Shown here in pieces: positions 224 through 45,026 of a stretch of DNA of 64,000 nucleotides; position 1 is the stretch's first letter; each line of letters starts with the position of its first letter. The position numbers were made by a program, and so were the translations under genes. Origin of the DNA: Phaeosaccion multiseriatum (lineage: Eukaryota; Protista; Ochrophyta, other classes); assembly GCA_965112735.1 (NCBI GenBank), contig OZ218960.1, forward strand, positions 3,286,001 to 3,350,000. Reading direction: 5' to 3'. The notes under the pieces are model-generated. The model worked only from the letters and a program-made list of their open reading frames with translations, did no database searches and was not told where the DNA came from.

Positions 224-1939
224 ATGGACATGGATGATGACGAGCAGCAGCAGGCGGCCATACGCCTCCAAGCCCTGCACCGGGGAATGCGGGCGCGACA
301 GAAGACGCGACAGCGGCGACAGCTCAAGCAGACGGAACGGGCGGAGCGTGAGAAGATGGCCACACGGCTGCAGGCTCTCAGCAGAGGCAAGAGGGAAAGG
401 CAGCTTGCGGGGGAGCGGAGGGAGCGGGTGGCCGCAGCCACTGCGATTCAGACCAAGATACGCGCCAAGCAGGCCACCAGAGGAGGAGGCGGGGAGGCGC
501 TGAGTGGGCCTGGACATTTCGAGAAGCACTCCATCGCACTCAATGGGGCGGACATTAAGAAGGGCCTTCATACGGTGGGCAGGAACCCGCACACGCTCAC
601 GCACTGCTACACGGGCCTGACCTTGAAGGACACGCACATTGGCAGCATCGCGGCCATTGCAGACTACCCTTTGCTGCAAAGCGTGGACCTCAGTGGGAAC
701 TGCATCTCTGACCTGCGCCCGCTGGCCCGCCTTCCCTTCCTCCTCGAGTTTAAGGCGTCCAGCAACTGCGTCAAAGAGTGAGTGATGTGATACTCGAGGG
801 GTCGAAGCGAGGGGCAAGGCGACGAACCATTGCATCACCTAAACTCATTGCTATCTCTCCCTATCTCTCTCCGCCCCCCGTCCCTCCCTCCCCCCCCTCC
901 CCCCTCTCCCACTCCCCCCCCCCTCTCCCCCACAGACTACCTGACTTGTCGCTGGTACGTGACGAGGATTACTCGTGGCGGGCCTCGGAGGCGGTGCTCC
1001 AGGATTGGCGCAGCGAGCTCGTGCACAGCGTCAGCATGCTGCACAATCTCGAGCTCGACTGTAACGAAATCGAGGTCATCCGCCCCATGCACGAGCACCG
1101 CTACCTGCAGCGCCTGGTTCTCAGCCACAACAATATTGGCAAGATAGAGGGGCTAGAGGGGCTCCACAGTCTCACTGACCTCGATCTCAGCTTCAATCGC
1201 ATCTCCGCCATTGGTACGGCGCTGAGCGGGCTCGGCATCACGGAGCTCAACCTCGAGCACAATGCCATCTGTGAAGTGGAAGGGGTGGACTCCAACCACC
1301 TCCCCCACCTGGCGACGCTCATGCTTGGTCACAACAAGATCACCACCTTGGGCGGGGCCAAGGGCTGTCTGCAGTTGCGAGCCCTGCACCTCGAGAACAA
1401 CTCCATCACACACATCCGCCAGGTGGAGTGGCTCACAGAGTCCACCGCGCTCTCCTGCCTCGTGCTGGAGGGCTGCCCGGTCATCGGGGAGGAGCTGTAT
1501 CGCCTGCGGGTCATCGCTCGCCTGCTGACCCTGCGCCTGCTCGACAGGACAAGCGTGAGCGCAATGGAGAAGGTGCGAGCGCTGAACCTGCAGGGAGGGG
1601 CCGACTCGGACCTGCCCAATCGCATCAAGACGCACATGGAGGCCTTCCGCGGGCCTAGGGGGGCAGGGGTCTGCGAGGGGGAGGAGATGGCAGTGGATGG
1701 GGAGGGCGAGTGCCTCAACGAACCCTTCTACCACGACATGTTGCCCAAGTGAGTGCCCTGAGTGCTGAGGAGTGAGTGGTGGGTAGTGAGAAGGGAGAGT
1801 CGACCATTGGGTACGGCATGCCGGCCACCCAACCGCATGAGTCCCCTCCCTCCCCCCCCGTCACCGCTGCCCTACCCGTACCCGTCTATCCTGCCCTGCC
1901 TGCAGATACGAGGAGCCCGAGCCGGAGCCCATCTTCTAG
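224..1939 (+). CDS. IQ-motif + leucine-rich repeat protein, LRGUK/LRRC23-like (axonemal type); 3 exons 224-777, 936-1748, 1906-1939
   Basis: N-terminal IQ-like motifs (LQALHRGMRAR, LQALSRGKRER, IQTKIRAKQA). SDS22-type LRRs (LQSVDLSGNCISDL, LQRLVLSHNNIGKIEGL) and an LRR cap (YRLRVIARLLTLRLLD). GT-AG introns keep the frame. No guanylate kinase domain. Confidence 0.75.
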
Positions 1940-8324: not shown

Positions 8325-9114
8325 TCATAGGCCGTGTGTGAAGGTCTCCCCCTTGGCCTTGGTGCCGGGGGCCACAGTTGCATGCGCACCCACTTGGCAG
8401 TCGTTGAGGTTGCAGCCCTCTCCGACGGTGGCGTCGCTGCACACGATGCTGTTCTGCACAATGCAGTTGTCTTTGATGGTGACTCTCTGCATGAGCAGGC
8501 AGTTGTTGATACGGCAGCGGGGCCCGACAACGCAGCCCTCGCCCAACACGGAGAGCTTACATGTCACCTTCTCGGCCACCTGCCACACGAGTACCGCGAG
8601 GGAGGGAGGGAGGGAGGGAGGGAGGGAGGGGGGAGGGATGGAGGGGATACAGACACAGACATACACACAGAGACGTGGATTCGATCCTGCTGAGTAACCG
8701 CGCAACTTGGTGGGGGAATAGATGGGGAAGGGTCTGATGGAGGAGGAGGGGGCAGGGGGGAAGAATGAAATGCAACCAAAGGAGTGCATCACACCCCTTT
8801 GGTACTTTGGATACCCCGACCAGGAAACCCTTCACCACCGCCGGTGCTAGGCTCTCAGGACAGAGAGACAGGAAAGAGACAAGGACTGAGAGAGAACACA
8901 CAAGAGAGGGCAAGAGAAATAGAGATTCCCCTGATTCCACTCTCCACTCCACTCCACCCCACTCCCGGACCCTCCCCTCCCCTCCACTCCACTCACTTGG
9001 CAGTCCCTGCCTTTGACCGTCTGGTCCTTCTTGTTGACCCTCTCCGGCGCTGGCCATGGCCGCTTGTAGCTTGCTCGCCTCTGACCGCCCTTGATGCTGC
9101 TACTGCTGCTGCTA

Positions 9115-23965: not shown

Positions 23966-26900
23966 ATGCAACAACTTGATTCCAATGCGGGGCTGGGGGG
24001 CAGGGGAAGGAGGAGGAGGCGGCGGCCACTTCCGTCGCCCGTGAGGAGCAGGAGCAGTAGAATCAGGCGAAGAAACGCTACCTCCTTCCTCCGCTCTCCC
24101 TCCCTTCTCCTGCTGTTGCTGCTGCCGAGCGCCCCCTCCTGGCTGGGGGAGTCCCTCGGGTGGAGAGGCGCTGCGGGAGTGTCGGCAGAGGTGCAGAGCG
24201 TGAGCAGGGTGTACGCCGCCGCGTGCATGGAGCGCGGGCCGGACTACTTCGACTACGAGCGCTTTGAGCTCGAGCTTCACCCCTCGGACCTTCCCGCCCT
24301 CAGCAGCAGCAGTAGTGGGAGCACTGGTAGGAGGAGGAGCAGCAGGACCAGCAAGACCAGCAGGACCAGCAGCTACGGTGGACAGCAACACCAACAACAG
24401 GATCAGCAGCACCCGCAGCGGCAGCAGCCCCCTGTTCACGACATGGACGCCTTCGAGATCGTGCGGCACCTCGGAGGCGGGAAGTTCAGCGAGGTGGGCG
24501 GCGAGAGACGGGAGGGACAGGGAGGGTTGGAGAGGCAGAGGGAGAGGGGGGGGAAGACAGGGAGAGGAGACAGAGATGGAGGCAGAGTGTGTGCGTGACT
24601 CACTCACTCACCCAGTGTTGTGCGTGTGCCAGAGTGGAGGGGCGGGGAGGTTTATTTTCGCACCATGTCAGCGTCTGAAGATGGCACTTAGCCCGCTATT
24701 TCTCTTCCCCCGATCGGAGGGTCCCGAAGTGGGAGAGGGCCCATCTTGGCCATCTTGGGGTGTGGCAAGAGGTGGACGGCAGATCAATATCGCAGAGGAG
24801 GGCCTGACTCCCGTGCTCCATCTTGTTCCTCGTTGTCTTCGCTCTACTCCCCCCTCTATGTACCCCGCGCTAAGGTGTTCGAGGCTCTTACGTATCTGCC
24901 CGCCCCGAGCGACAACCCCTCCAGAGCCGTTCCTATTCCGATTCCTTGTCCTACGCCCCTCGTGGCTTGCCCCGTTGCGGACGTGTCGAGCAGCAGCAGC
25001 GGCCTAGATGGCAGCAGAAGCAGAGTTGTCGTGCTCAAAGTGCTCCGGCCCACGCAGGTACGATAGGCACCACTTTATCATGTTGCACTTGCTTGTTTGC
25101 TTCCCTCCCCGTCCCTTCAGAGAGCCGCCACCCACGGTACTCCCATCGATGGATCCACCTGTTCTCGGGGTACTCCTTGCCCGCACCCATATGCCTCTAC
25201 CTGTTCCTCCTTGCCCGTATGCCTGCGCCCCCCTCACAGCTGCGGAAGATCAAGCGCGAGGTGAAGATCCTGCAGACGCTCAACAGCGGCGCCAACACGA
25301 ACACCATCAAGCTTGAAGGGCTCTGTGCACACCCCGTCACACAGGAGGTGAGAGAGGGGGGGGGGGAGAGAGGTGGAGGGAGAGAGGAGGGAGAAGGAGT
25401 AGGGGAAGAGTGAAAGAAACAAGGCGGAGAGAGAGGTAGAGAGAACGGAGAAGGGAGGGAATGTGAAGAGTGCGTGTCAGAGAGAAAGACGAGAGAAAGA
25501 TTGGACTCTGTTCGCCCGTGTTCGCCCGCAAGCCCAGCCCCAAACCAGCGCCTTTGTTCTCCCTCCTCCTCCTGCGCCCAACCCAGTTCCTCGCTCGCCT
25601 CCTCCCTCTTATTCTGCCTAACCCACCCCCCCCCCCTTCCCTCCCCTCCTGCCCTCTGGTTCGACCCGCCCCTCCATCCCCTCCCCTCCGCTCCCCTGCC
25701 GGTCCATGCGATGAAGGTGACGCTGGTGTTGGAGCACGTGGGCAGCGAAGCGCAGTGGCTGTGTCACGGGGGGAGGGAGGGCAGAGAGAGGCTCAGTGCA
25801 GAGGAGGTGCAACTTTACATGTACAAGCTGCTCCAGGTGGGTGTCAATGTCGATGTCGACACAGAATGTCGATGCCGGCTCAGGATATTGATGAGAGGCA
25901 GACAAGCAGACAAACAGGCAAGTGGGGTGATGACGGATCTGACTTCATCATGGCGCCCTCTCCTCCGCCCCTCCTGCTCACCAGGCGCTTGACTACTGTC
26001 ACTCTGTCGGTATCATGCACCGGGACGTCAAGCCGCGTAACGTCATGATCAACCGCCGCACCAAGGAGCTGCGCCTCATTGACTTCGGCCTGGGGGACTT
26101 TTATCTGCCCGGCAAGAGGTAAGTCAACAAAAGGGGCAGGACGTCAGCAAGAGGTTGGACTGGGCTGGCTGGCTGACTTACTTACTTCCTTACTTCCTTC
26201 CTTCCTTCCTTCCTTCCTCCCTCCCTCCCTCCCTCCCTCCCTTCCTTCCTTCGTTGCCTCTTCCCCCATCTCCCTAACCCTTACCGTAAGGTACCCTGCG
26301 CGAGTGGGCAGTCGCTACTACAAGGCCCCGGAGCTGCTCCTGGGCTACCGCTTCTACGACTACTCCGTTGACATATTCAGCGCCGGGTGTGTGCTCGCGG
26401 GGCTGATCTTCCAGGTGTGTGTGTTGGCGGGGGAGATTTGGGATGGGGTCATCACCTGCTGACCCAATTTGTGCCCCGCCTACGACCCACTCACGTCGGT
26501 CGCCCTCTCTTGTTTGCCCTCTCGTGCTTGTGTCTACCCTTCTGCGCGTGTGCTTGTGCTTGCAACAGAGAGAGCCTTTCTTCCGAGGCACGGACACGGA
26601 GTCGCAGCTCGTGTGTGTGGCACAGGTGAGTGAGTGGGTGGGTGTAGGTGGGTGCATGTGGGTGTATGTGGGTGTATGTCTATGTCTATGTGCGTGTGTG
26701 TTTGTCCGTGCCTCTCTTCTCTCTGGGTAGGTGTCTGTGTGTGCGTGTATGTGTGTGTCAGTCTCTCTCTCAATGTGTAGGTCTCCGTGTGTGCATGTGT
26801 GTGGTCGAGCGCCGCATGTTCACAGCATCGATTGATGGGCCCGCTGTCCCTCCCCCCTGGGTCCCCCCTCTCCCCCCTGGGTCTCCCCGCCCCCCTCTCC

Positions 26901-27490
26901 CTCCCCCCCCCCTCCCGCTGCTCTGCTGGCAGGTGCTGGGCTCAGCGGCGCTGCACGAGTACGCGGGGAGGTACGGCGTGAAGCTCAACAAGGCTCTCAA
27001 GGATGGGCTCGCCAGGGCAGCGGTCAGGCAGGCATATGGGCAGGGATCGCAACAGACCAGTCCACCGCAGAGGCAGCAGAGAAGGGGCCAGGCTCAGGGA
27101 CAGCACCAGGGTCAGGCTCAGAAGCAGCGCCAAGGCCAGGGTCAGAGTCAGAGTCAGGGTCAGGGTCAGAGTCAGGGTCAGAGTCGGGGTGATGGTCGGG
27201 CTCCTCCCGGCGAGATGCCGAGTGTGGCGTGGAGCTCTCTGGTGCGCGCCCTGTCCCCGGGGGGCGGGTCTCCTCTCTCTCCTTTGCTGTGCTCGGACGA
27301 GGCGCTGGACCTGCTGGGAAAAATGCTTTGCTACGACCATCAGCAGAGAATCACCGCCGCTGAAGCCCTCAGGCACCCTTTCTTCCGGGGGGTGGCGTCC
27401 AGCAGCAGCAGCAGCGGCAGCAGCAGCAGCAGTGGGGGTGGTGGTAGTGGTGCTAGTAGTGGTGGTGGCGGCAGCAGCGGTTCTTTTTGA
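23966..27490 (+). CDS. Divergent casein kinase II alpha-like Ser/Thr kinase with N-terminal hydrophobic segment (8 exons)
   Basis: SVSRVYA…[112 protein letters not shown]. Confidence 0.9.
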
Positions 27491-28413
27491 AAGGCACCAT
27501 CCCCCCCTCGCCCTCTCAGCTCTCAGCGATGGGGCGGTCGGGCGGGTGGCGCAGCTCTGCCACCAAGGCCAAGGCCAAGGCTAAGGCGGACAAGAAGAAG
27601 GGGTGGGGGCGCTTCTCTTCTCCTCCCTTTCGTACACCGTAAACTGCTCACGGCCCTCGCCTGTCTGGCTGACTGACTGACTGACCGACTGATGTACGAT
27701 CGATCCATGTAAGATACTTGTAAAACACTCTCAAGCTCCATGGCACACAGCACATGTCTAAGAGTTGAACACGGCGGCAGTGCGCACAAGCTTCCTCAGC
27801 CACACACCTCACTCTGATCATGATGATCATGATGATGATGGCGCACGGAGGAAGCAGTTGACCTAAAGAAAACACTCACACAGGTTAAGACATGGTCCAC
27901 GCGTCAGGACAGGGGTGGACTCATTCGACGGAGACCCTCCCTTCGTTCGTGTTGTTGTGGCCTGTCTGTCTCAGGCACTCGGTTCATTACCACACGGTTG
28001 GGTCGAAATCCCCACTAAAACAACTACAATCGTCCGACTTGATGCCATCGCCAGTCCGCTCTCTTGCCTCTCGGCCCCGCTTCCCCCTCAGTGTCTCTCA
28101 AACAGGCTTCCCTCCCTCCCCCCCTCTCCGGGTGACTGACTCGCGACAGCAGCCGCCCCCCCCCCCCCCCCCAAGGTGCCTCCCTCTGCAGCTTGTTCGC
28201 TCGTCCTCCTCTCACCATCCTCCTCGTCGAGGCTGCTGCCGCCGGCCCTCTCGCCCCCCCAGCACTGACGCCCGCCCTGACGCATGCCTCGCCCGTGCAC
28301 TGCCATCCCCCCAAAACTTCCAGCATATGCTTCCACCCTCTGCTCGGGACAAACGCTTGCCATCCCTCCTTCCCTGCCATCCCCTGTCATCCACTGACAT
28401 CCACCCTAGGCCT

Positions 28414-31660: not shown

Positions 31661-34600
31661 ATGCCGCCGCGCAGAAAGAAAGTGCTGAATGTTGCAGAGA
31701 AACCGAGCGTGGCTCGTGCAATAGCGGGAATTCTCAGCGGCGGGTCCGACAGGAACAGGCAAAGCCAGACCAGAGTGAGTGCAGGTGTCTTCGCTCTTCA
31801 CTCCTTATCGAGGCCTTATCGCTTATCCCCCCCCTCCTTCTTTAGCTCCTCCCCTTCCCCCCTCTACTCTACGATTCATCGGTCAATCGTGGCGTGGGTA
31901 TTGTGAATGTGGTAGGGGAGGGCAGAGTATCTGAGTGCCTGCAAGTTAGCGTGGGCCTGTGCCGCTGATGTCTCGTGTCGTGCCGTCCTTTCCCCCTCTT
32001 GCCTCTCCCCGCAGTGGAACAAGCTGCACGACTTTAGCAACTGCAACGTCATGGGAGAGAACGTGGACATGGTGAGTGAGTGAGCTAGTGAGGCCATGAG
32101 GCGATATGACCCCATACTCAGGTACTTCCCTGTATAGAAGGCAATAAGGCTCCTTGACCCCTTGATGCAATATGGATGCAATTCCCAATGCCCAATGCCG
32201 TGCCGTGCCAGGTGGTGACGTCAGTGACGGGGCACCTCATGGAGATGGAGTTTGATCAGCCCTACGGTAACAAGTGGAGCGCCTGTGCCCCGGGGGACCT
32301 CTTCCACCTGCCCATCATCAAGTACGTCAAGGAAGACAACAAGTGAGTCATTCAATCGGTATGCCAAGGGACAACACCAGTAGACGAAGCCAGGCCCTCG
32401 TAAGCTTCCTTCCAGCCCCCCACCTCCCCCCTCTCAGTCTCACCTTTACTTAGCCCTCTCCTCTCACCCTCCACTCATCCTCCGCTGACCTCCGCTTGCC
32501 CTTGTCGCTTGCCCTCCTCCGTTTTTGTCCTCGGTGCAGAGACACTGAGCAGCAGCTGCGAGACGAGGCGTCCAACGCCAACTGGCTCGTGCTGTGGCTG
32601 GACTGCGACAGGGAGGGGGAGAACATCGCATTCGAGGTCATCGACGTAAGTCAGTCTGGAACGGATGACAGTGGATGGTCTGTCCTCCCAAGGAACAATC
32701 CTCGTATGCCTCTCATGTCCACCGACGGCCACCCCCCCCGCCTCGTATGTCCCTCGTATGTCCCTCGCATGTCCCTGGTATGTCCCTCGCATGTCCCTGG
32801 TATGTCCCTGGTATGTATGTCCCAGGTGTGCAAGCAGGCGAATCCCCGCCTGCGCGTCTTGCGTGCCCGCTTCTCTTCCCTCATCGAGCGCGAGATCAGG
32901 GGGGCGGTGCAGACGCTCAGAGCTCCTGACGAGCACGCCAGCAATGCCGTTGACACCAGGTGTGCGGGGGAGAGGGGCGAGGGATAAGATTCTACTATAC
33001 TGAAAGTGGAGCTGAAACCGCCTGCTGCTCCTGCTGCTCCCCTCAGGCAAGAGATCGACCTCCGCCTGGGGTCCGCCTTCACGCGCTTCCAAACCATCCT
33101 CCTGCAGAAGAAGTTCGAGGGGCTGGGGGAGGGGGTCATCAGCTACGGACCTTGTCAGTTCCCCACACTGGGCTTTGTGGTGGAGCGCTTCCTCAGGAGA
33201 GAGAACTTTGTGAGTGAGGAGTTCTGGACGGTCAAGCTCGAGTACAGAGAGGAGAGGCAGGGGGAGGACGAGGAGGAGGACGAGGATGATGAGGATGATG
33301 ATGATGAGGATGATGATGATGATGATGATGACGACGACGAGGAGGGGGAAGACAACGGTGATAGTAGTGATGACGAAGGCTGGCACGGGCAGGGGCAGGG
33401 GCGGCCGCGGCGACGTGGGGTGCAGCAGCGGCGGAGGGAGCTCCAGAGAAGGCGGCAGCGCGAGGCGAGGGAGGCGAGGAGGAGGCAGGGGGTGCCCAGC
33501 GCATCCTTCGCGTGGGGGCGTGGGCGTGTGTTTGACAGATGCATGGGCCTCGCCGCGCTGGACCTGTGTGTGGAGGACGGTGAGTCATACACGGGAGGCG
33601 GTAGAGCAGTTGGTGATACAGAGGCCAGGGGAGGGCAGGAGAGGGCAGGGGAGGGGCATTGTCGTGCGTCGTGTGGTGTGACTGCTCCCTGCCCGCGCCT
33701 GTCTCCAAACGGCGGCTCTCCCCGTCCCGCCTTCCCGTCCACTACCATCCCATCCTGTAGGCTCTGCGGTGGTGTATCACCTTGACTGCAACCGCACTAC
33801 CCGCCAGAGGCCCGTGCCCTTGTCCACTGTGGAGCTGCAGAAGAGGTGAGAGGGTGGGAGAGAGGGGGAAGAGAGAGGGAGAGAGAGAGAAAGGGAGAGT
33901 GAGAAAGGGATGGAGGGCTGCTCGAGCCTCATCTGTGCCCCCCCCTTTCTCCTCTCTCTGTCCTCCACTGCCATCCAGGGCGAGTCGTTTCCTGCGCCTG
34001 ACCTCTGAGCGGACCATGACTGTGGCGGAGAAGATGTATCAGAGGGGCGTCCTCTCTTACCCCAGGACAGAGACAGAGAAGTTCAAGCCGGACCAGGTCA
34101 GTACGTCAGGGGACCAGTTTGTCAGTGTGCCGTAAGTTAGTGGGTAGATACTGTGTGTGTATGTATTTGTGTGCCTATATCCTCACACGTGTCTCACTGT
34201 CCCGAGCCGTTCTCGGCCCCGCTCCCCCTTGGACTGGACTGATGGATTGATGGATTGACTGATGGACTGATCGGTGTCAGGACCTGCTGGGCAGCATCGG
34301 AGAGTTCCGCAGGCACAGCCGCTACGGAGACTACGCCGAACACCTCCTGGACGGGGGCGGATTCCAGTAAGTCAGGGAGTGAGGGGCTGCGTGAGCGAGG
34401 GATTGAGTCAACGAGTGAGGGAGGAAGAGAGAGAGCGTACCGTTGTGCTGAAACTGAAACTTACCCTATCTCCTTGCCTGCCCCCAGACTGCCGCGTGCG
34501 GGTGCGGGCGACGACGCCGCGCATCCCCCCATCCACCCCACCAAGGCCGTGGAGCCGCAGCAGCTCGACAACGACGACGAGCGCAAGGTGATACAGCGAG

Positions 34601-36904
34601 ATGGGGGGATGGTAGTGGATGGCAGGGGATGGATAGGCTCTGTCCTGGCACCGAGGACAGCGTGGTGCTGATTGGGACTGATTTTCGGTCTGTGCTGCCG
34701 TGTGCCCTGTGACCTGTGGCATTTCACCAACAGGTGTACGACCTTGTGGTGAAGCACTTCCTGGCGTGCTGCAGCCGAGACGCGGAGGGGCAGAAGACCA
34801 CCGTCAAGGTGGACTGCGGGGGGGAGGAGTTCGTCACCTCAGGTAAGAAGGGGGGGCATTCTCAGCAACTGAAAGGCATGCTGGCCTCCCCCTTCGCCCC
34901 CTCACCCCCTCACCCCCTCACCCCCTCACCCCCTCACCCCTTCACCCCCCGCCTTCCGCCGCACTGGAGGGCTCATGATCACCACGCCAAGCCCCTCACC
35001 CCCCCCCTGCCATTCCCTGCCATCCCGCGCCCTCCCCGCTGTATCGCCAACTGCTGCACTGCTATAGGGCTGATGATCACGGCCAAGAACTGGTACGACA
35101 TCTACACGTATGAGTCGTGGAACAGCCGAAGCATCCCCAACTTCTACCAGGGGCAGATCTTCACGTAAGTCACTGAAAGGCACTGCTTCTGACGTACTTC
35201 TCGGGCAGCAGAGTAGCTGCAGCTCCCTCTCCTCTCGGAGACCCGCTCCTCCCCCACCGCTCACTCTCTCTCTCTCTGTCCACGTCCCTTACCTTCCATT
35301 TTCACCGACGGGGCTCAATGGACGGCAACCCATGGCCCTATTGACCATTTCATCAATGGCGATGGATGGCAATGAATGGCGATGGGTGGCAATGCACGGC
35401 AGGCCGTCGGAGCTGTCCCTTTCGTCGGGCCGCACGGAGGCGCCTGTGCTGCTGTCGGAGAGCGACCTCATCGCCCTCATGGACCAGGAGGGGATTGGCA
35501 CCGACGCCACAATCGCTGAGCACATCAAGAAGGTCCATGGATGGCAGTGGATGGCAGTGGATGGCAGTGGATGGCAGTGGATGTGGGTGATGGAATTGAG
35601 GGGAAGGGAACGGCAGGGAGCCCTCTCCTTTACACGAGCCACACCCCTTGCGTGGAGAGATACAATCGTCAGTCGCCAGTCGTCAATCATCAATCCCCGA
35701 ACCCCCCCTGCCCATGTGCCCCTCTCTACCGTGCCTGCCCACATGGCTGCCCATATGCCTGCCCATATGCCACCCACATGCCCCCCCCCCCTCCTTAGAT
35801 CCAGGAGCGCGACTACGTGGAGTGTGTGCAAAGGCGCTTCGTGCCCACCCGCCTGGGCAGAGCGCTGTACCGGGGCTACGAGGACATCGGCTACAAGCTC
35901 ATGAAGCCGTACCTCAGGGCGGCCATGGAGGTATACCAGTTGGTACTATGGGGAGGGAGGGGATTTAGAGGCATATGGGTAGGGAAGGGAGGGCGAGAGT
36001 GTGCACGTTGGTGACGTCACGCGCTGAAGAGACGGGATGGACAGGCGTTGTTGTACAGCGAAGCGAAGCTCAAGCTCAAGCTCAAGTGCGTGTGCTTGTT
36101 GCTTCCCCCTCCTTCCATCCACTGCCATCCTCTCCCCAGAGAGACTGTAAGAGGATCGCCGACGGGGAGGAGACGAAGGAGAACGCGGTGCGGCGCTGCC
36201 TCGGCACCATGGAGGTGGCCTTCCAGACTTGTCAGAGGTACTTGCTTACCAGCAGGGGGGGAGGAAGGATGGAGAGGCGTATTTCAAGATGTGGGTAGGG
36301 TTGAGTGGGAGTTGCAAGTGCATGCATGTGCCTTACCTTCTTTCTCTCGTTGTGTGTGGACCTCATGTGGTGCCTCTGAACAAACCCCTGCCTTCTTCCG
36401 CCTTCTTCTGCCTTCTTCTGCCTTCTTCTGCCTTCCGCTGCCTTAGCAACTCGCACAAGCTTGACGCAGCCGTGGCCGCGCTCTTCGCCCCCCTGGGCTC
36501 GGGGGCCGACACCGTCACGCGCAGGGGGGGGCGCAACTTCTCGCGCTGCTCGTGCGGAGGGGGTATGGACCTTCGTGACACCGCCTCTGCCCGCCGCCCG
36601 ATGCCTCTGCTCTTCTGCTCGGCGTGTGAGGTGAGACTCAGCCTTCCCCCCCCCCCCTCTCTCACTCTGAGGTGCAGCTCAGCCTCCTTCCCTTCCCTTC
36701 CCTTCCCACTCTTCCCTACTACAGTGACTTGTCTCGCTCCGCCTCACGCCCTCACTCTCACTCTCTCACTCCCTTCCTTTCCTTCATGCTTCATTAGATC
36801 GGCCTGAGTTTGCCGCACAAGGGGAATCTCAGCAAGCGAATGCCCCCAATGCGCTGTCCGCTGTGCCACTTCGAGGTGAGGGGCCGAAGGGGGGTGGAGC
36901 AGTG

Positions 36905-36972
<68 letters not shown>

Positions 36973-39900
36973 CGCGTTTTTCTCTCCCTGTCTCCACTGT
37001 CTCTCCCTCCCCCCCTCTCCATCTTTTCCCTTCTTCTCTCCCTCCATCCCTCCCTCCCTGGCTCGCTCTCTGGCCCCCACCGCAACGTGGGCTCGCATCC
37101 ATCGCAGACACGAGAGCATGCCGCACTCCGAAGCGCGGAACCCACCCCATTGACTTACTCTGCCCCATTGACTCACTCTGCCCCATTGACTTACTCTGCC
37201 CCATTGACTTACTCTGCCCCGTGACTCACTCTGCCCCATTGACTTACTCTGCCCCATTGACTTACTCTGCCCCATTGACTTACTCTGCCCCATTGACTCA
37301 CTCTGCCCCATTGACTTAACTCTGCCCCGCGGCATACCCCTGCTGCCTCCTCCCTCCTGCCTCCTCGCTCCTCCTTCCTCCCTCCTCCCTCCTCCCTCCT
37401 CCCTCCTCCCTCCTGGCCAGGTGCTGAGCGTGAGTGCGGGCAACGACTACACGGGCAAGGGCTACTCCGTCTGCCCGAACTGCTTCAACCATCCCCCCCA
37501 GGGCCACGAGGGAGAGTCGGGCTTCAGGTGCTTCAAGTGCACGTGAGTCGTGGGGTAGGACTCCGCGTCGGCATAGACACGCACTCACTCACTCACTCAC
37601 TCACTCACTCACTCACTCACTCACTCACTCACTCACTCGCTCACTCACTCACTCACTCACTCACTCACTCACTCCTTCTCACTCACTCGCTCACTCACTC
37701 ACTCACTCACTCACTCACTCGCTCACTCACTCACTCACTCACTCACTCACTCACGTACTCACTCACTAGGGCACCCCTTTACTCACTCGCTCACTCACTC
37801 GCTCACTCACTCATGACTCACTTTTCCACTTGCTGGAACTGAGACTGACACTCTGAACCTGTGTGTATATATGTGTGTGTGTGGCTTCACCCTACCCCGC
37901 CTCCCAGGGCGGCGTGTCCGCTGGCCACAGGCACGGACGACTCCCCTGTGGCCACTTGTTCCAAGCCAAACTGCGGACAGAGCCTCGCGCTGCGCAAAAC
38001 GGAGGCGGGCAAGTGGAATCTTGCCTGGTGAGTGGGGGGATGGCAGTGGATGGGGGAGGGGAGGGGAGGGAGGTAGGGAGAGAGAGAGGGAGGGAGGGAG
38101 GGAGGGAGAGAGAGAGAGGAAGGGAGGGAGACAGGGATGTAGGAAGGGAGACAGGGAGGGAGGGAGGGAGCAAGATGGATGGATGGAGGAAGGGAGGGAG
38201 GCGGTACACTATCGACAGGTCCGCGTGAAGGAACACAAGCGCAGGACCAATAAGGCAATGATGGCAATCCCCCATAGAACGCTACTCAGCCAGAGTATGC
38301 CATTTGCTGCGATTGATTAGGACTGGGCAATTTGCCGTTTGCTTGTACCCGCTCATCCTTCACGCTCTCCCCGAATCTGCCCCCGTCAATGCCGAATCTG
38401 CTCCCATCAACGCCAAAATCTCCTCAACCTCCTCCCCTCTCCCCTCTCACAGCAAGGGCTATCCCGCATGCCAGGGGAGCACAGTTTGGCTTCCAAACGG
38501 GATCACGAGCGCATCACGATCGGACTCGCTCTGTCTGCGGTGCGGAGGGCAGAATGAGGACCAGGTCCACAAGCTGAAACTCACATTGCGGCCGGGCTCC
38601 TTCCCCCCCGGAACACCGGCTGAGTACACGGCCTGCCCGTTTTGCGACGAGCTGCTGAGGGAAAACGGCGGCAACGGGAGAGCCAGGAACTACCAGGCGA
38701 GGGGGGGGCAGCAGCGGGACAACACTCCAAGGGGGGGCAGGGGAGGAGGAGGAGGAGGCGGTGACGACGATGGCAGAGGAGGAGGAGGAGGAGGAGGAGG
38801 GGGAGGAGGAGGGGGAAGGGGGGAAGGAAAGGAGAACGATGTGTATGGAGACGCAATGAAGGGCATTGGCCCTGCCAAGGCGGCGCGGAGAGGGAGAGGG
38901 AGAGGCGGGCGGGGGGCGGGGGGGGCAAGGGGCAGCGGGGGGAGAGGAGGAGGGGGGGCAGGGAGGGGGGGAGAGGCCGAGGAAGAGGTGCGCGTGTGCA
39001 GGTGTGAGGGCTCCCCACAGGCCAGCCTTAACACCACACGCTCGGGACAGAACGAGGGCAGGCAGTTCTACGCGTGCCGTTTGGGCAGGTGAGAGGAGGC
39101 CTTCAGATGCCTCCAAAGGCCTACAGATACCTGCAGCCTGTCAGCATCACATACCACCCTACCCCTCTCCCTCTGTTCGGCCAACTCGATCTCTGCCTTT
39201 CCCCTCCTCTCTCTGTACGCCTGGGAAGTCTTGCCCCGCCTCTACCTCTCTGTACGACTGAATCGTTTGTGCTGCATGGCCTTGCCCCATCCTCCTCTGC
39301 CCTTTCTGTACAACCAACTCGCACACCATCCTTATTGCAGGGATGACGGCTGCGGGTACTTCTCGTGGGCTGATGAGCCCGAGCGGGGTAAGTGCACCAA
39401 GTGCACCCACACCAACGCAGCAATGCCTCAGGCCTGAGATATGATGATGTCACAATAGGGGACTTTTTCGGAGCCCGCCTTGCCCTTCCCCAGTGCTTAC
39501 TCCCCGCTTGTGCTCTCTTTCTGCTGCTTCCGCTGCTGCTGGCCCCGCAGGAGGGGGAGGTGGAGGGGGAGGTGGAGGGGGGGGCGGTGGGGGAGGAGGG
39601 GATGGGCGTTCGTGCCAGTGCGGGGAAGAAGCGGCGTATCGCACCTCTAGATCGGCAGACAACCCAGGGAGGAAGTTTTACACATGCCCCAAGCCAAGGT
39701 GTGTGTGTGTGTTGTGCATTGTGTGTCCGTGTATATGTACGTATGTATGTATGTATGTATGTATGTATGTATGTATTTATGTGTAGGAGATGGATGCATT
39801 CCCTTGACGCTTGCTCGACACCCCCCCGACTTGTCTCTGCCGTCTGTTGCCTTATCATCGCCACAGGGCAGAGCAATGCCACTTCTTCCAGTGGGACGAC

Positions 39901-40005
39901 GTTCCTGACGAGGGAGGGGGGGAGGGCATGGGGGGCGGAGGGGGAGTGAGAGGGAGAGGCCGAGAGGGAGGAGAGGGGGGGCGAGGGCGAGGCAGGCGGA
40001 GATGA
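31661..40005 (+). CDS. TOP3A: DNA topoisomerase III alpha (type IA) with C-terminal Zn-ribbon/zf-GRF domains and RGG tracts (many exons)
   Basis: TOPRIM motifs [18 protein letters not shown] and [10 protein letters not shown]; [14 protein letters not shown]; catalytic SYPRTET; AHPPIHPT; GIGTDAT. Two zf-GRF domains (NEGRQFYAC…CGYFSWAD; NPGRKFYTC…CHFFQWDD). Confidence 0.96.
37145..37328. repeat. Intronic 18-bp minisatellite CCCCATTGACTTACTCTG, about 10 copies
   Basis: Directly visible tandem array in a TOP3A intron. Confidence 0.95.
37582..37812. repeat. (CACT)n intronic microsatellite
   Basis: Directly visible in a TOP3A intron. Confidence 0.95.
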
Positions 40006-40555
40006 CTAGGTCGATGACGCCGCCGATGAAGGCGATACCTGAGCGAGTCATGTGTGAGGGGAAGCAGTGGCTGGCCTGAGGAGGCGAGAGGATGAGCGAG
40101 CGCGCGACGGGAGAAGAAGGTGAAAGATACATGCGTGAAGATGTGGCGGATTCGAGGCGAGCCAAGGAAGGTTGAGGGAGGCAGGCTGCATACACAGCTG
40201 ACGCGCGAGAGTAGTTGCTCTAGGCTTTTTTAGAACACCGCCTTCCCTCCTCACCTTTCTGCCTCTGCCTCTCTCTTTGCCTAGGCTGCGATCGTGTTTG
40301 ATATGTTGCTGCCCCCTCGGCCTTCCCATCGAGGCTCCCAAGTAGTGCAGGAGTGGTTCTAAAAAAAAAAAGGGAGGTTTGAATATGGCCTTCCCGGGGG
40401 GGGCGCCCTGTTGCCCTTGGCAGTTGGGCTCTGTTCTTTGGCGCGAGAGTGCTTTAGTAACTCGCATTAAAAGCTTCCATGCTGTTAGCGGGGAGGGAGA
40501 GAGCTCAGGCTTCACAACCATTCCCACACAGCACATCGCATCCGAGTCGATCATC

Positions 40556-41831
40556 ATGCGCGCTTTCCTCGCTACCCTCCTCCTGGCGTCATGCCTCGCC
40601 GCCCAAGGCCTCTACCTCGAGCAGGCGGATGACCGTGAGCTCGCCGGGAGTAGCAGCAAGAGCAGCAGCGGCTCCTCCGGCAGCGGGAGCTACCCCGCGT
40701 ACTTCCCGAAGGGTTTCAGCGGCTCCTCCGGGAGCAGGGGCGGCTCATCGTCCTCCTCCTCGGGCTCCTCCTCGGGATCGCATGGAGGAGGCATCTACCC
40801 CGTCCACGGCGGCAAGCACCTGGACTATGACGATATCAAGCTCCACCCCCGCTGGATCAAGGATGACCACGGCAAGTGGCTCTACAAAGTCCCGGTAAGC
40901 AAGAGCACTGAAGAGTTTGGCCTTCTCCAGCAACGTTGATCAATCACTTCGCTCACAAAGTACTAACTAGTTCCTCGCTGTCCCATGGCTCGACTTTTTC
41001 AAGGAGCCCAAGTGGCACGAGGAGTACGTGTTTGAAGACCCTGACCACACTTGCACGGTGAGTGGGTGAGCATGAGCGAGCGAGCGAGCGAGTGATTTTG
41101 ACAGAGCATCCAGACTGCATTTGCACCGGCCTTGAGACTCAGCGACTCCTTCTGCGACCCCCCTCCCCCGCTTGCTCGCTCGCCAGCATTACTGCAAGCA
41201 GAAGGACTTCCCCATGTACGGCATGGACTACTGCCACAGCTACTTGCCCTACTACAAGGACTACTGCATGGACTACTACCATCCCTACTACCACCCCTGG
41301 ATCTTCTCAAAGGGCCCCCACGGATTCTCGTCCTCCGGCTCGTCCTCCAGCGGCGGCTCTTCCTCCTCGTCTTCGTCCTCCAGCGGCGACCATAACCGCG
41401 AGCTGTGCGGCACGGAGTGCTTCCCCGAGGAGGACAGCCCCGGGCGCCACCTTCTGACCGAAGAGGGCGAGGCCTTCCACCGCGAGACGGGCGAGTGCCC
41501 TCCTTGCCCCGCCCGCAAGCTCACCACCTCCTCCTCCTCCGGCGACTCCTCTGGATCATCCTTCTCCTCGGGCTCCGGTTCAGGCTCCTTCTCTGGCCGC
41601 GGCTCGTCTTCTGGCAGCGGCTCGTCGTCCGGCTCGTCCAGCGGCAGCAGCCCCTTCTACCGCTACTGGGAGCCCAAGTGGCCCGAGAAGGAGAACATGT
41701 ACTGCCACTTCTACTACTCCATCTGCGGCCAGACTGTGGCGTATCACCTCAGTGGTAGCTACGGCTCCTCCTCGTCCTCGTCCTCCGGCAGCAGCGGCAG
41801 CAGCAGCTCCTCCTCTGGCTCGTCCCACTAG
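40556..41831 (+). CDS. Secreted Ser/Gly-rich, Tyr/His/Trp/Cys-rich protein with four RXL motifs (345 aa); exons 40556-40894, 41004-41057, 41187-41831
   Basis: Signal peptide MRAFLATLLLASCLAAQG. Phase-0 introns and strong C-ending codon bias. Poly-Ser/Gly blocks alternate with aromatic/Cys blocks, and EPKW occurs twice. Confidence 0.85.
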
Positions 41832-42567
41832 AGCTCAGGCCGCGCATTTGGCGCTGGCTTTCGCTAGCTCTCTATCCATGACTATATCTATCAAATGTAC
41901 ATGACCAAACGAACCTTTCAGTTCTCTGACACTTCCTATACCCCTCACGCCTCCATTCTGTGCGTGTGGGTGTGTATAATACCTCTGTGCGAGCTCACCA
42001 GTCGAGAGCGACACCCCTCGAGTTTTGAAGTGCGAGTGTGGGGCTCCTGTGGGCCTCGGGGAGAGAACGGGAGAGGCGAAGAGTGATGGAGTCGGAGAGC
42101 ACAGGAAGCCCGAGGTAGGTGGAGAGATACCAAGCCGTCATCACTCTCGTCACTCGTCGATGAAGCTTCCGGCACACGAGCAGAGCAGCAGGTTGGCCTT
42201 CTCTTGTTCCTTGTTCAGAAGCACGCGGGTAGTAGGGACCCAGTTAACCAGCCGCCCGCAGGGCCCGAAAAAATTGCAATCGCATATGCTATAGCAGGAG
42301 AAGGGTATATACTGCTCGAGGGGAGAGCAATATGCGAAAGCACAATCGCATATTGTGTTTTGTCGACACCCAGTATATGCGTTTTATGATATATATGCGT
42401 ATATTGTGCGGACACCCTATATATGCGTTTGTTACTTGCTCAAATATACGTTCATTCTCTGTCTGCAGCAGATACGCTCCTAATGACCTGCGCCGACGCA
42501 AGAGCTCTCCCGCGTCTCGGCAGCTCGGCAAGCTGCTCAGCTAAAGCAAGGTCAAGTACTTGTCTGC

Positions 42568-42780
42568 TCAGTTCGTCGTCGAATGCGGCCAGCCTACCGT
42601 GTCTGCATGCTCGCGGTTGTGACACAACATCACTGTCAGCTGAAGCAAGTCCTCCTTCATCTTGGCTTGGCCAGGACTGATCACCCTATTTGGGGTGGAG
42701 AAGACCCTTTCCATGAACGCCGAGGATGGCTGGATCAGAGAAGCGAGTTGCATCAGTCGGAAGAAGTGAGGAAGCTGATT
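42568..42780 (-). pseudogene. hAT transposase C-terminal dimerisation-domain remnant
   Basis: QLPHFFRLMQLASLIQPSSAFMERVFS…MKEDLLQLTVML matches the hAT P…LA…P.SSA..ER.FS motif. Confidence 0.78.
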
Positions 42781-43011
42781 GCTACGTGTAGTCGGCGCCC
42801 GACATGCTTCTGAGACAGGCCAGCCCAGAAGCAAGAAGCAGGCTGGCTGGCGCCGACCAGAACCAGGAACCAACCTTGGCCCTCATCATTGCCTTACTAC
42901 ATGGCTTTCCCCCATAACCTGGAACCTGCCGCCGACTAGCACCAGGAACCAGGCCGGCTGGCGCCGGCCAGAACCAGGAACCAGGGTCGCCTCAGAACCA
43001 AGCGGGCCGAG

Positions 43012-43900
43012 TGTAGCCAACCCTGCTATCGCTAGCAAGTCGGAAAGTGAGCCAATAATCTATGAGATGGGTGCAAGGTTGTAAAGTTTGGAGGCCTTGC
43101 CTCAGCTGCAGTAAAGAGCCGAGTACCCTTTGGCTTTAGGGTGGATAAGCTAAGAGTGAGGGAGCGCCACAGGCTACTACTCCCGGTGGGCTGTGTGCCA
43201 CCTCATTGTACATTGTATTATTGTAACGTTATACAGCCTATATGACTGCGTGGTGACAGTTACACGTACTAAGGCAATGAATGAGGCTGTAGGGGCAACA
43301 CTTCCTCCTCGAGAGAGAAGCTCGACTAAGAAGACTAAACTAAATGCTAAAAGAGAAGATGAGAGAGAGAACATGTTCATATGAATAAAAGTACCCAAAA
43401 AGGGTTCCCGAAGGGTTCCTTATCGGCGGCCTGCTCGCGGGCGTCGGCGTGACGAGGGGCCGCGAGACCGAAGGAAGCGTTTAGCGTCCTCCGCCAAAGA
43501 GCGACGAGGGAAAGAGGAGAGGAATTGCTCCCAAGAGAGCGGGAAGGTCATCATTCATGACGGTCAAAGGTTCCCAAGTATCGTCGGTGGCATTAAAGCC
43601 CTTCCAGGAGGTGTGAACCTGCCAGGGTGCGCCTTAAGTGGGATGTTGTAGGTCCTTGAAGGCGGAGACGACCCAGGAGGCTGAGGCGTGTGAGAAACGT
43701 ACTGCATACAGCCTCCGTTGGCCCGGCTCCCGCCGGCAAGCGTACGCTGGATATGCAAAGCATGCGAAGCGAGGGAGGGACAGGCCTGAACATTTCGCAG
43801 AGAGTGATACAGATTGAAGAGAAGGAACAGGCCTACATTGCCGAGAAGGGAACCGTCTCCCCCCGCCCTTCCGACGTCCTTCACCCTCTTCTGCCGAGGA
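43012..43900 (-). mobile_element. Truncated Ty3/Gypsy chromovirus: integrase C-terminus/chromodomain remnant, PPT (43301-43310), 3' LTR (43012-43300)
   Basis: Minus strand 43675-43532 reads WVVSAFKDLQHPT*GAPWQVHTSWKGFNATDDTWEPLTVMNDDLPALL. GAGGAGGAAG directly precedes TGTTGCC…GGCTACA (TG…CA, 289 bp, short terminal inverted repeat). Confidence 0.8.
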
Positions 43901-45026
43901 TGCGAGACATAAATAAATTGAAGTTTGACTTACATTTTTCCCTCCCTCGTGGCCGATGGGATGTACTTCTTAGTATATACGAATATATGGGCACACATTG
44001 GCCATTTATGCAGCTGAGCTGGGAGTACCTTTTACATTCTCAAAATATGCGACCACTTGCATGCTCCCAAAGCCCTGTATATGCGCCGCGATAGGCCGAA
44101 ATATAACGAAAATACAGCGAAGGACCACCCAACCCCATGCAACGTCGCCCGGCTGTAGCGCTACAAGTCCGAACATCCGAAGCTTGAAGGAGCACTGGGG
44201 AGGCACTCAAGACTGCGTACGGGATGTGTGGCGACAATGGAGGGCCTACCAAGTGCGGTGGCAGAGATATATATGCGATCGCGAGACTAACTCAGAATAT
44301 GCGACACCATATGCCCCAATATGTGAAACGCATAATCGCATATGCGTCTGTATAAGCGGTCGCATACTCGTATATTACATCGTATCCCAGCCCGAGCGCA
44401 ATATGCGCCTCTGTCGGGCAGTATATACGACGCAATATGCGATCCTCAAGGTTTGCAAGAATATGAGAATATGGTGGTGTTCTTAACTGGGTCCCACTCA
44501 GTCCGTGTGCTCGTGCGCTGCGTGTGTGCGCAGAGTGGGTCCTTCAGCGCGACCCAAGGGAATCGTCCCACATTCGCAATACATGTCCAAGAGAATAGGC
44601 CGATCGTCTATTACTAATGCAGTCTCCTATGTACCGTATCGCCCTGGCAGATGATTGTATATATAGCGGAAAGTGTAGATCCGTCAACAGGGGAGCTTCA
44701 CTCCGTCCTGGCAGACGCCAGTTCTTGTGAAATAGTCAACAAGCGGCATGTTAACTTTATAGTCGGAGCGAGGCCGGTCCTTTGGTCGGGAATAGAGCGG
44801 ACAGACAGACGGGCGGAGGAGGGCACTTCCCTTCACTTTACTTCACATATCCAATACCAGCCAGTGATTGAGCTGCCATTGATACTGCAGGCGGCGCTTG
44901 ACGCTGTGCTTGACATTCATGTACGGTACGGGCGGCTTGAGGGAGCGTCCCCCCGGTTCCTTAAGTCACTGCCTACGGTACCCGTCGTGAGGACGACGTT
45001 CGTTCGGCTCCTTTGCCCTCAGGCAG

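Follow-up and report, generated by a model that had tools for sequence, protein, structure and literature searches.

A predicted RXL-punctuated, Ser/Gly- and Tyr/His-rich secreted precursor from a multi-copy gene of the ochrophyte alga Phaeosaccion multiseriatum

Described RXL precursors and the gene considered here

For diatom wall proteins, it is documented that RXL motifs are removed both behind the signal peptide and from between the repeat units (PMC4557024, PMC5525289, PMC5501833). Silaffins, silacidins, cingulins, frustulins, SiMat7-like proteins and silicanin are processed at RXL by an unknown protease (PMC4557024, PMC5525289, PMC5501833), and the parmalean homologues of silicanin also bear RXL (PMC10328945). 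The cingulins CinY and CinW, which belong to the girdle-band microrings of Thalassiosira pseudonana, are secreted, repetitive, low-complexity proteins in which Tyr/Trp-rich regions alternate with Ser-rich regions bearing KXXK (PMC4557024, PMC9650480). Silaffins (Sil1p, tpSil1-3) are Lys-rich and polyamine-modified, and silacidins are short and rich in Asp/Glu. In both, a signal peptide is followed by a pro-piece that ends in RXL, RXL stands at the unit ends, and Ser is abundant (PMC4557024). Here we describe a three-exon gene on the plus strand at positions 40556-41831 of a 64,000-nucleotide stretch of Phaeosaccion multiseriatum DNA (assembly GCA_965112735.1, contig OZ218960.1, positions 3,286,001 to 3,350,000; the window), the product of which has 345 amino acids. 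With about balanced confidence, we read it as a lineage-restricted, multi-copy nuclear gene for a predicted soluble secreted precursor of ~35 kDa with a role in the cell covering, the matrix or an adhesive. It is plausible that what is new here is an RXL-punctuated, low-complexity secreted precursor based on His, Tyr and Cys and free of KXXK (loosely "Lys-free", with 15 Lys in 345 residues).

The gene is composed of three open reading frame (ORF) pieces, which can be joined in frame through canonical GT-AG introns. The unusual composition and the C-ending codon bias are common to all three pieces.

40556-40894, plus strand: exon 1, 113 codons, ATG at 40556, GT donor at 40895; encodes the putative signal peptide, the pro-piece, arm A1 and the start of core A
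40895-41003, plus strand: intron 1, 109 nt (gtaagc...caag), GT-AG, phase 0, GC 0.47
41004-41057, plus strand: exon 2, 18 codons, EPKWHEEYVFEDPDHTCT, with the EPKW of core A at the exon start
41058-41186, plus strand: intron 2, 129 nt (gtgagt...ccag), GT-AG, phase 0
41187-41831, plus strand: exon 3, 214 codons and the TAG stop

Both introns are required because the unspliced frame meets a stop at 40937-40939; a second stop lies just inside intron 2. The GC content was 0.47 and 0.62 in the introns and 0.55-0.56 in the flanks, and the GC3 of the gene was 0.87. Other frames also carry overlapping ORFs across the gene. The 345 residues include S 90, G 46, Y 25, P 20, H 18, E 18, L 17, K 15, C 11, R 10 and W 6. 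Thus, Ser accounts for 26% and Gly for 13% (together ~40%), and Lys for ~4%.

The protein can be divided into the following parts.

40556-40609, plus strand: residues 1-18, signal-peptide-like N-terminus (MR, 14 hydrophobic residues, AQG), with small residues at -3 and -1
40610-40642, plus strand: residues 19-29, acidic pro-piece of 11 amino acids (LYLEQADDREL), net charge about -3, isoelectric point (pI) 4.05, ending with RXL site 1
40643-40792, plus strand: residues 30-79, Ser/Gly arm A1, 50 amino acids, including a small aromatic patch, YPAYFPKGF
40793-41327, plus strand: residues 80-178, core A, 99 amino acids across all three exons, rich in Tyr/His/Trp, with 15 Tyr, 11 His, 4 Cys and EPKW
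41328-41405, plus strand: Ser/Gly arm A2, 26 amino acids, with the C-terminal end DHNREL (RXL site 2)
41406-41522, plus strand: residues 205-243, acidic spacer, 39 amino acids, 4 Cys (CxxxC ... CxxC), with RHL inside and RKL at its end
41523-41651, plus strand: Ser/Gly arm B1, 43 amino acids, with engineered Gly/Ser linkers as its only PDB matches
41652-41762, plus strand: core B, 37 amino acids, PFYRYWEPKWPEKENMYCHFYYSICGQTVAYHLSGSY, rich in Tyr/Trp/His, with 2 Cys
41763-41828, plus strand: Ser/Gly arm B2, 22 amino acids; its C-terminus has neither a hydrophobic tail nor KDEL

The N-terminus looks like a signal peptide. This call was made by rule (hydrophobicity and small residues at -3/-1), and the mean Kyte-Doolittle value of the 14-residue hydrophobic stretch was 2.27. 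A plastid or periplastid address was considered and rejected: Leu follows the predicted cleavage site, but the ten residues behind it have an acidic net charge (-3), which does not fit a transit peptide. Behind the pro-piece, the layout arm-core-arm occurs twice, with the acidic four-Cys spacer in between. The predicted product A comprises residues 30-204 (arm A1, core A and arm A2), and the predicted product B comprises residues 244-345 (arm B1, core B and arm B2). Part of core A is assembled from 12-nt tandem units that encode YYKD/YYHP.

In a local motif count over the protein, no transmembrane segment, no glycosylphosphatidylinositol-type or other hydrophobic C-terminal tail, no KDEL and no N-glycosylation site was detected. 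The mature protein has a mass of 34.9 kDa, a pI of ~5.95 and an even number of Cys residues (10). Its computed net charge changes from ~+12 at pH 5 to ~-9 at pH 7 because of the 18 His residues. SG dipeptides and S-x-S were counted 24 and 54 times, respectively, and Asp/Glu are nearly absent from the Ser/Gly arms. An AF2 model of exon 3, made with no alignment, gave a pLDDT of 41, which fits disorder, yet such a value is also usual for orphan sequences.

We compared the two cores with each other. The sole stretch common to cores A and B is EPKWxE. This extended match recurs in 1% of shuffles (p ~0.01), and some 4-mer recurs as EPKW does in 18% of shuffles. Beyond EPKWxE, the alignment of core A with core B was no better than that of shuffled controls. 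A reading as two homologous modules was rejected, since EPKWxE alone is shared between the cores. The expression "two modules", as used in an earlier sequence-only reading of this DNA, is best taken as a description of layout and composition rather than of demonstrable duplication: the arm-core-arm arrangement indeed occurs twice, but the cores differ in length (99 vs 37 amino acids) and have no detectable homology apart from that short stretch.

The four RXL sites are as follows.

40634-40642, plus strand: RXL site 1, REL, end of the pro-piece, residue 29, context DRELAG
41397-41405, plus strand: RXL site 2, REL, end of arm A2, residue 204, context NRELCG
41445-41453, plus strand: RXL site 3, RHL, within the spacer, residue 220, context GRHLLT
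41514-41522, plus strand: RXL site 4, RKL, end of the spacer, residue 243, context ARKLTT

Sites 1, 2 and 4 lie exactly on the borders between the arms and other parts. The contexts form two pairs, D/N-REL-A/C-G and G/A-R-H/K-L-L/T-T. From its own composition, the protein would be expected to contain ~0.5 RXL; the four sites are an ~8-fold enrichment. At least four RXL were found in 0.08% of whole-sequence shuffles, and in 0.2% when the Ser and Gly positions were fixed. PEXEL-like export was also considered and rejected, since it would call for E/Q/D at the fifth position, where these sites have G or T.

The sequence-only reading had already placed the start codon, a signal peptide, a short acidic pro-piece ending in DDREL and three more RXL sites (REL, RHL and RKL). 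The start codon and all four RXL coordinates match the sequence exactly, and the signal peptide (by rule) and the pro-piece are both present at 40556-40642. The start at 40556 and the end at 41831 also hold for the span that it gave the gene; it did not spell out the two phase-0 introns that the frame requires.

Codon usage, gene copies and relatives

C-ending codons are frequent in the gene, as compared with the nine other long ORFs of the window.

C at third positions: 63% in the gene (60% without Ser and Gly codons), 17-37% in the nine other long ORFs
C at four-fold sites: 0.64 in the gene, 0.20-0.40 in the nine other long ORFs, most of which prefer G
C at two-fold Y/H/N/D/F/C codons: 0.88 in the gene, 0.46-0.84 in the nine other long ORFs

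This bias is good evidence that the frame is coding and has a constraint of its own. The codon usage had been called almost all C-ending and taken as a sign of high expression. The bias is real, at 63% C and a GC3 of 0.87, and this observation is correct. By analogy with other algae, it may go with high expression.

The public sequence data consist of four runs from one sample and one study, none recorded as RNA, and we examined them over 39500-43000. The longest contigs in these runs exceed 200 kb. Taking the contig of the upstream flank (39789-40435) as the reference, the contig depth over 40606-42232 was 3-9x in all four runs. Loose ends are present at 40406 and 42125, where other copies run on into different sequence. 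The raised depth and the loose ends together indicate that the gene, a short promoter and the 3′ region are present in several near-identical copies.

40406-42125, no strand assigned: multi-copy segment, several near-identical copies in the sample, delimited by depth, contig pieces and the loose ends at 40406 and 42125

Within the 64-kb window, no further copy of the gene was found by tblastn or blastn.

The copies differ from one another. A 3-nt in-frame indel was found at 40784 in exon 1 (arm A1). In a variant contig, 41389-41512 is replaced by 10 nt, a net change of -114 nt that keeps the frame and gives ...SSGGDPC-RKL-TTSSS... This spacer-less variant has lost REL and RHL and retains RKL between the two products. 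Two runs show it, with a single contig apiece, and the shorter side of the joint spans only 22 letters. Intron 1 is the only part of the gene in which single-base indels were found, at 40977 and 40995. Among the nine exon substitutions, four are synonymous, including one inside RHL, and five are non-synonymous (Q17P, Y157H, I170T, H176Y and F178R); Tyr and His are exchanged in two of these five, Y157H and H176Y. Thus, the reading frame and the composition are kept and the exact sequence is not, which is typical of low-complexity structural proteins.

Apart from these variants, contigs in three of the DNA runs join 40673 to 41954, so that 1280 nt, most of the gene, are skipped. One side of this joint has 21 letters. 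Either a copy with a deletion or a misassembly within the Ser/Gly-coding repeats may explain it.

Relatives were searched for with single-exon translations or core pieces; for exons 1 and 2, the coverage was Pfam, the ESM Atlas and the local searches. Pfam searches with exons 1 and 3 gave no family at E ≤ 1. A word search with exon 3 was dominated by low-complexity candidates, none of them significant, and one with the core residues 1-47 of exon 3 gave zero candidates. HMMER found no match at E ≤ 0.001 for 194 amino acids of exon 3 among 1.84 billion cluster representatives. Since the protein itself went unmatched in this pass, the gene is not in that collection. The ESM Atlas gave no usable match with exon 3 or with exon 1, and a scan of metagenome contigs with the 48-residue core gave 81 pattern matches, none of which was confirmed. 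In the PDB, the only matches were the linkers aligned to arm B1. The proposal of a distinct family, made in the sequence-only reading, agrees with the outcome of all these searches.

Neighbouring genes and repeats

The gene stands outside any cluster of similar or secretory genes. It is preceded on its own strand by a topoisomerase III gene (~33000-39900, plus strand), in which Pfam detected Topoisom_bac at 34713-35165. The C-terminus of this topoisomerase carries GRF-type zinc fingers with long poly-Gly/Arg runs between them (38304-39800). A CK2-alpha-like kinase with short exons is encoded at 25900-27500 (plus strand; a 15-residue piece of it at 25985-26029), and one CK2-alpha-like ORF has a Gln/Gly-rich insertion and a Ser/Gly tail. 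An exon for the left-handed beta-helix of eIF2B-epsilon (8328-8831, minus strand) and an exon of an LRR_8 protein (754-1749, plus strand) were also found, both ordinary neighbours of the housekeeping type.

A hAT-like non-autonomous transposon extends from 42233 to ~44495, beginning ~400 nt past the stop codon of the gene. Its ends are the perfect 13-nt inverted sequences GGGACCCAGTTAA / TTAACTGGGTCCC, and several subterminal inverted repeats of the ATATGCG type are present. A remnant of a hAT dimerisation domain on the minus strand (42571-42873) is weak (E 0.005) and below the Pfam cut-off. The contigs of the public DNA runs end precisely at 42232/42233 and have ~4x depth. In two of the runs, the loose ends at 42125 continue with letters resembling 44727-44757. 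Therefore, other copies, or the other haplotype, are without ~42126-44726 (~2.6 kb, including the transposon). A short repeat at 42776-43000 is a high-copy element, with 170-300x single-copy depth and many internal joints; repeat units at ~42840-42985 would encode QAGWRRPEPGT twice.

Proposed processing, alternative readings and meaning

We infer secretion, RXL cleavage, modifications and a material function along the following lines. Signal peptidase would take off residues 1-18. By analogy with diatoms, an RXL-directed endoprotease of the secretory pathway would then remove the 11-residue pro-piece and excise the acidic four-Cys spacer, and this cleavage would free product A (~175 amino acids) and product B (~102 amino acids). 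Each product may be viewed as a sticker-and-spacer molecule, in which a compact Tyr/His/Trp/Cys core stands between two flexible, hydrated Ser/Gly arms. The arms, with their 54 S-x-S and 24 SG, are probably O-phosphorylated or O-glycosylated. Disulfides, stacked aromatic residues and contacts of His with metals or charges could make the cores cohesive, and oxidative Tyr cross-links might contribute. As the His residues switch the net charge between pH 5 and pH 7, the protein might be stored soluble, or condensed and inert, in acidic secretory vesicles and might set once released. The most likely role, at about an even chance, would be that of a structural component of the cell covering, the extracellular matrix or an adhesive. 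This reading is supported by the in-frame indels in exons, by the retention of RKL where the spacer is lost and by the synonymous change within RHL. The sequence-only reading had likewise proposed a secreted, RXL-processed structural protein. The layout, the RXL sites on the module borders and the retained RKL speak for that part of it; the link to silica that it had added is unsupported.

Several observations weigh against the structural reading. The contigs of the four public runs are continuous through intron 1 and through intron 2 into exon 3, cover the intergenic flank and are without exon-exon joints. Thus, the runs are DNA, and transcription and splicing of the gene are predicted from the sequence. 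Long ORFs of the window average ~3.5 RXL per 345 amino acids, so that the absolute density here is ordinary for an R/L-rich genome. What stands out is how the scarce Arg and Leu residues gather in the motif and where the motif is placed; the absolute count is unremarkable. Five of the nine substitutions are non-synonymous, and purifying selection is not strong. The family is an orphan, with no relative detected in any collection searched, and offers no homologue as a functional handle.

A role in silica scales, a cyst wall or a lorica would make the protein a matrix precursor in which phospho-Ser arms and His/Tyr cores guide silica in an acidic deposition vesicle. We regard this as improbable. 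A signal peptide, a short pro-piece ending in RXL and RXL between the units are arranged as in diatom biosilica precursors (PMC4557024, PMC5525289); by the positions of the motifs, with cleavage itself predicted, the locus resembles the silaffins in this respect. The Tyr/Trp-rich cores alternate with Ser-rich regions as in the cingulins (PMC4557024), and His would bring the charge to ~+12 at pH 5. However, the arms are without KXXK, whereas in cingulins the Ser-rich regions carry it, and the gene differs from them further in its prominent His and Cys and in the lack of any sequence similarity. Silaffins need Lys clusters for polyamine modification and silica targeting (PMC4557024); the count here was 0 KXXK, as the sequence-only reading had noted in pointing to the lack of dense KXXK, and Lys makes up 15 of 345 residues in long, Lys-poor products with aromatic/His/Cys cores. 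Unlike the short, acidic Ser/Asp/Glu peptides of silacidins, the products are 175 and 102 amino acids long and near neutral, and their arms are almost free of Asp/Glu; acidity is confined to the pro-piece and the spacer. Neither Pfam nor HMMER detected homology to any silica protein. With no KXXK, no acidic arms and no such homology, the silica role put forward earlier is unsupported. His/Tyr-rich proteins active on silica exist elsewhere, namely sorghum Siliplant1 (Slp1), which has YH-P motifs and RXL, and sponge glassin (bioRxiv 10.1101/518332). Slp1 is also secreted, disordered and built of repeats with RXL at their ends, and in both proteins silica activity is His-based and not of the silaffin type (bioRxiv 10.1101/518332). 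Slp1, however, is basic (pI 9.3) and contains 20% Pro and 13% Lys, whereas the protein here has a pI of ~6, ~40% S/G and ~4% Lys, and there is no homology. Less probable again than the silica role is a biomineral-matrix family of a non-diatom ochrophyte that would have arisen independently of silaffins and polyamine-lysines, RXL-processed, "Lys-free" in the above sense and based on His/Tyr/Cys and (phospho)Ser, with a charge that moves from ~+12 to ~-9. Closer to the adhesive side of the structural reading is AC3362 of Amphora coffeaeformis, a Tyr-rich, low-complexity secreted protein that proved to be a wall protein, not an adhesive (PMC4220933). Poly-Ser and Tyr/His chemistry for coacervation and cross-linking is likewise found in mussel foot proteins and in the sandcastle-worm proteins Pc3 (poly-phosphoserine) and Pc1/Pc2 (Gly/Tyr/His). 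Unlike the protein here, AC3362 and the animal adhesives are Lys-rich and basic; the likeness is compositional only, and here both chemistries are combined in one RXL-bearing polypeptide.

The Ser/Gly arms could instead carry large, possibly sulfated glycans of a mucilage or glycocalyx, with the aromatic cores as anchors. Such a proteoglycan or mucin-like core is unlikely, if a little less so than the silica role. Ser and Gly at 26% and 13%, the 24 SG and 54 S-x-S, the absence of N-glycosylation sites and the secretory features would suit it. Ser-Gly repeats are glycosaminoglycan attachment sites in animal serglycin; however, the SG sites here are without the flanking acidic residues found at animal glycosaminoglycan sites, and the Thr/Pro-rich signature of mucins is missing. 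It is as improbable as the silica role that the locus is not a functional protein gene at all; in that case, the gene model would be wrong, or low-complexity, GC-rich DNA would contain a dispersed repeat or an ORF carried by a transposon. The segment is multi-copy and has a hAT-like element directly downstream, the public runs are DNA only, every protein collection searched lacks it, other-frame ORFs overlap it (as expected in GC-rich repeats) and half of the substitutions are non-synonymous. Nevertheless, a 345-codon frame is maintained across two canonical introns, and its GC3 of 0.87 contrasts with the GC of the introns (0.47/0.62) and the flanks (0.55-0.56). The C-bias also extends outside the Ser/Gly codons, exon indels are in frame with single-base indels restricted to intron 1, and an orderly N-terminal signal is combined with RXL on module borders. 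We give least weight to a polyprotein from which soluble bioactive peptides would be released, His/Tyr-rich and with an antimicrobial, metal-binding or signalling function. RXL-delimited units, small acidic spacer peptides with Cys, His/Cys/Tyr-rich cores that could bind metals and a multi-copy, fast-diverging family would be in line with it; but the products are atypically large (175 and 102 amino acids) and dominated by long S/G arms, and at pH 7-8 their net charge is near-neutral to acidic, whereas antimicrobial peptides are mostly cationic.

If the structural precursor proposed here is expressed and processed, the diatom-type RXL route for pro-proteins would act in a further stramenopile alga, and on secreted structural proteins unrelated to those of diatoms. 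This would argue for RXL as a general secretory processing signal of ochrophytes and not a mark of silica proteins, which would affect the screening of candidate biosilica proteins. The protein would also represent a compact natural sticker-and-spacer design, in which Gly/Ser linkers, Tyr/His/Cys knots and a pH-switchable charge are combined, and would be of interest for the biology of algal cell coverings and for biomaterials.

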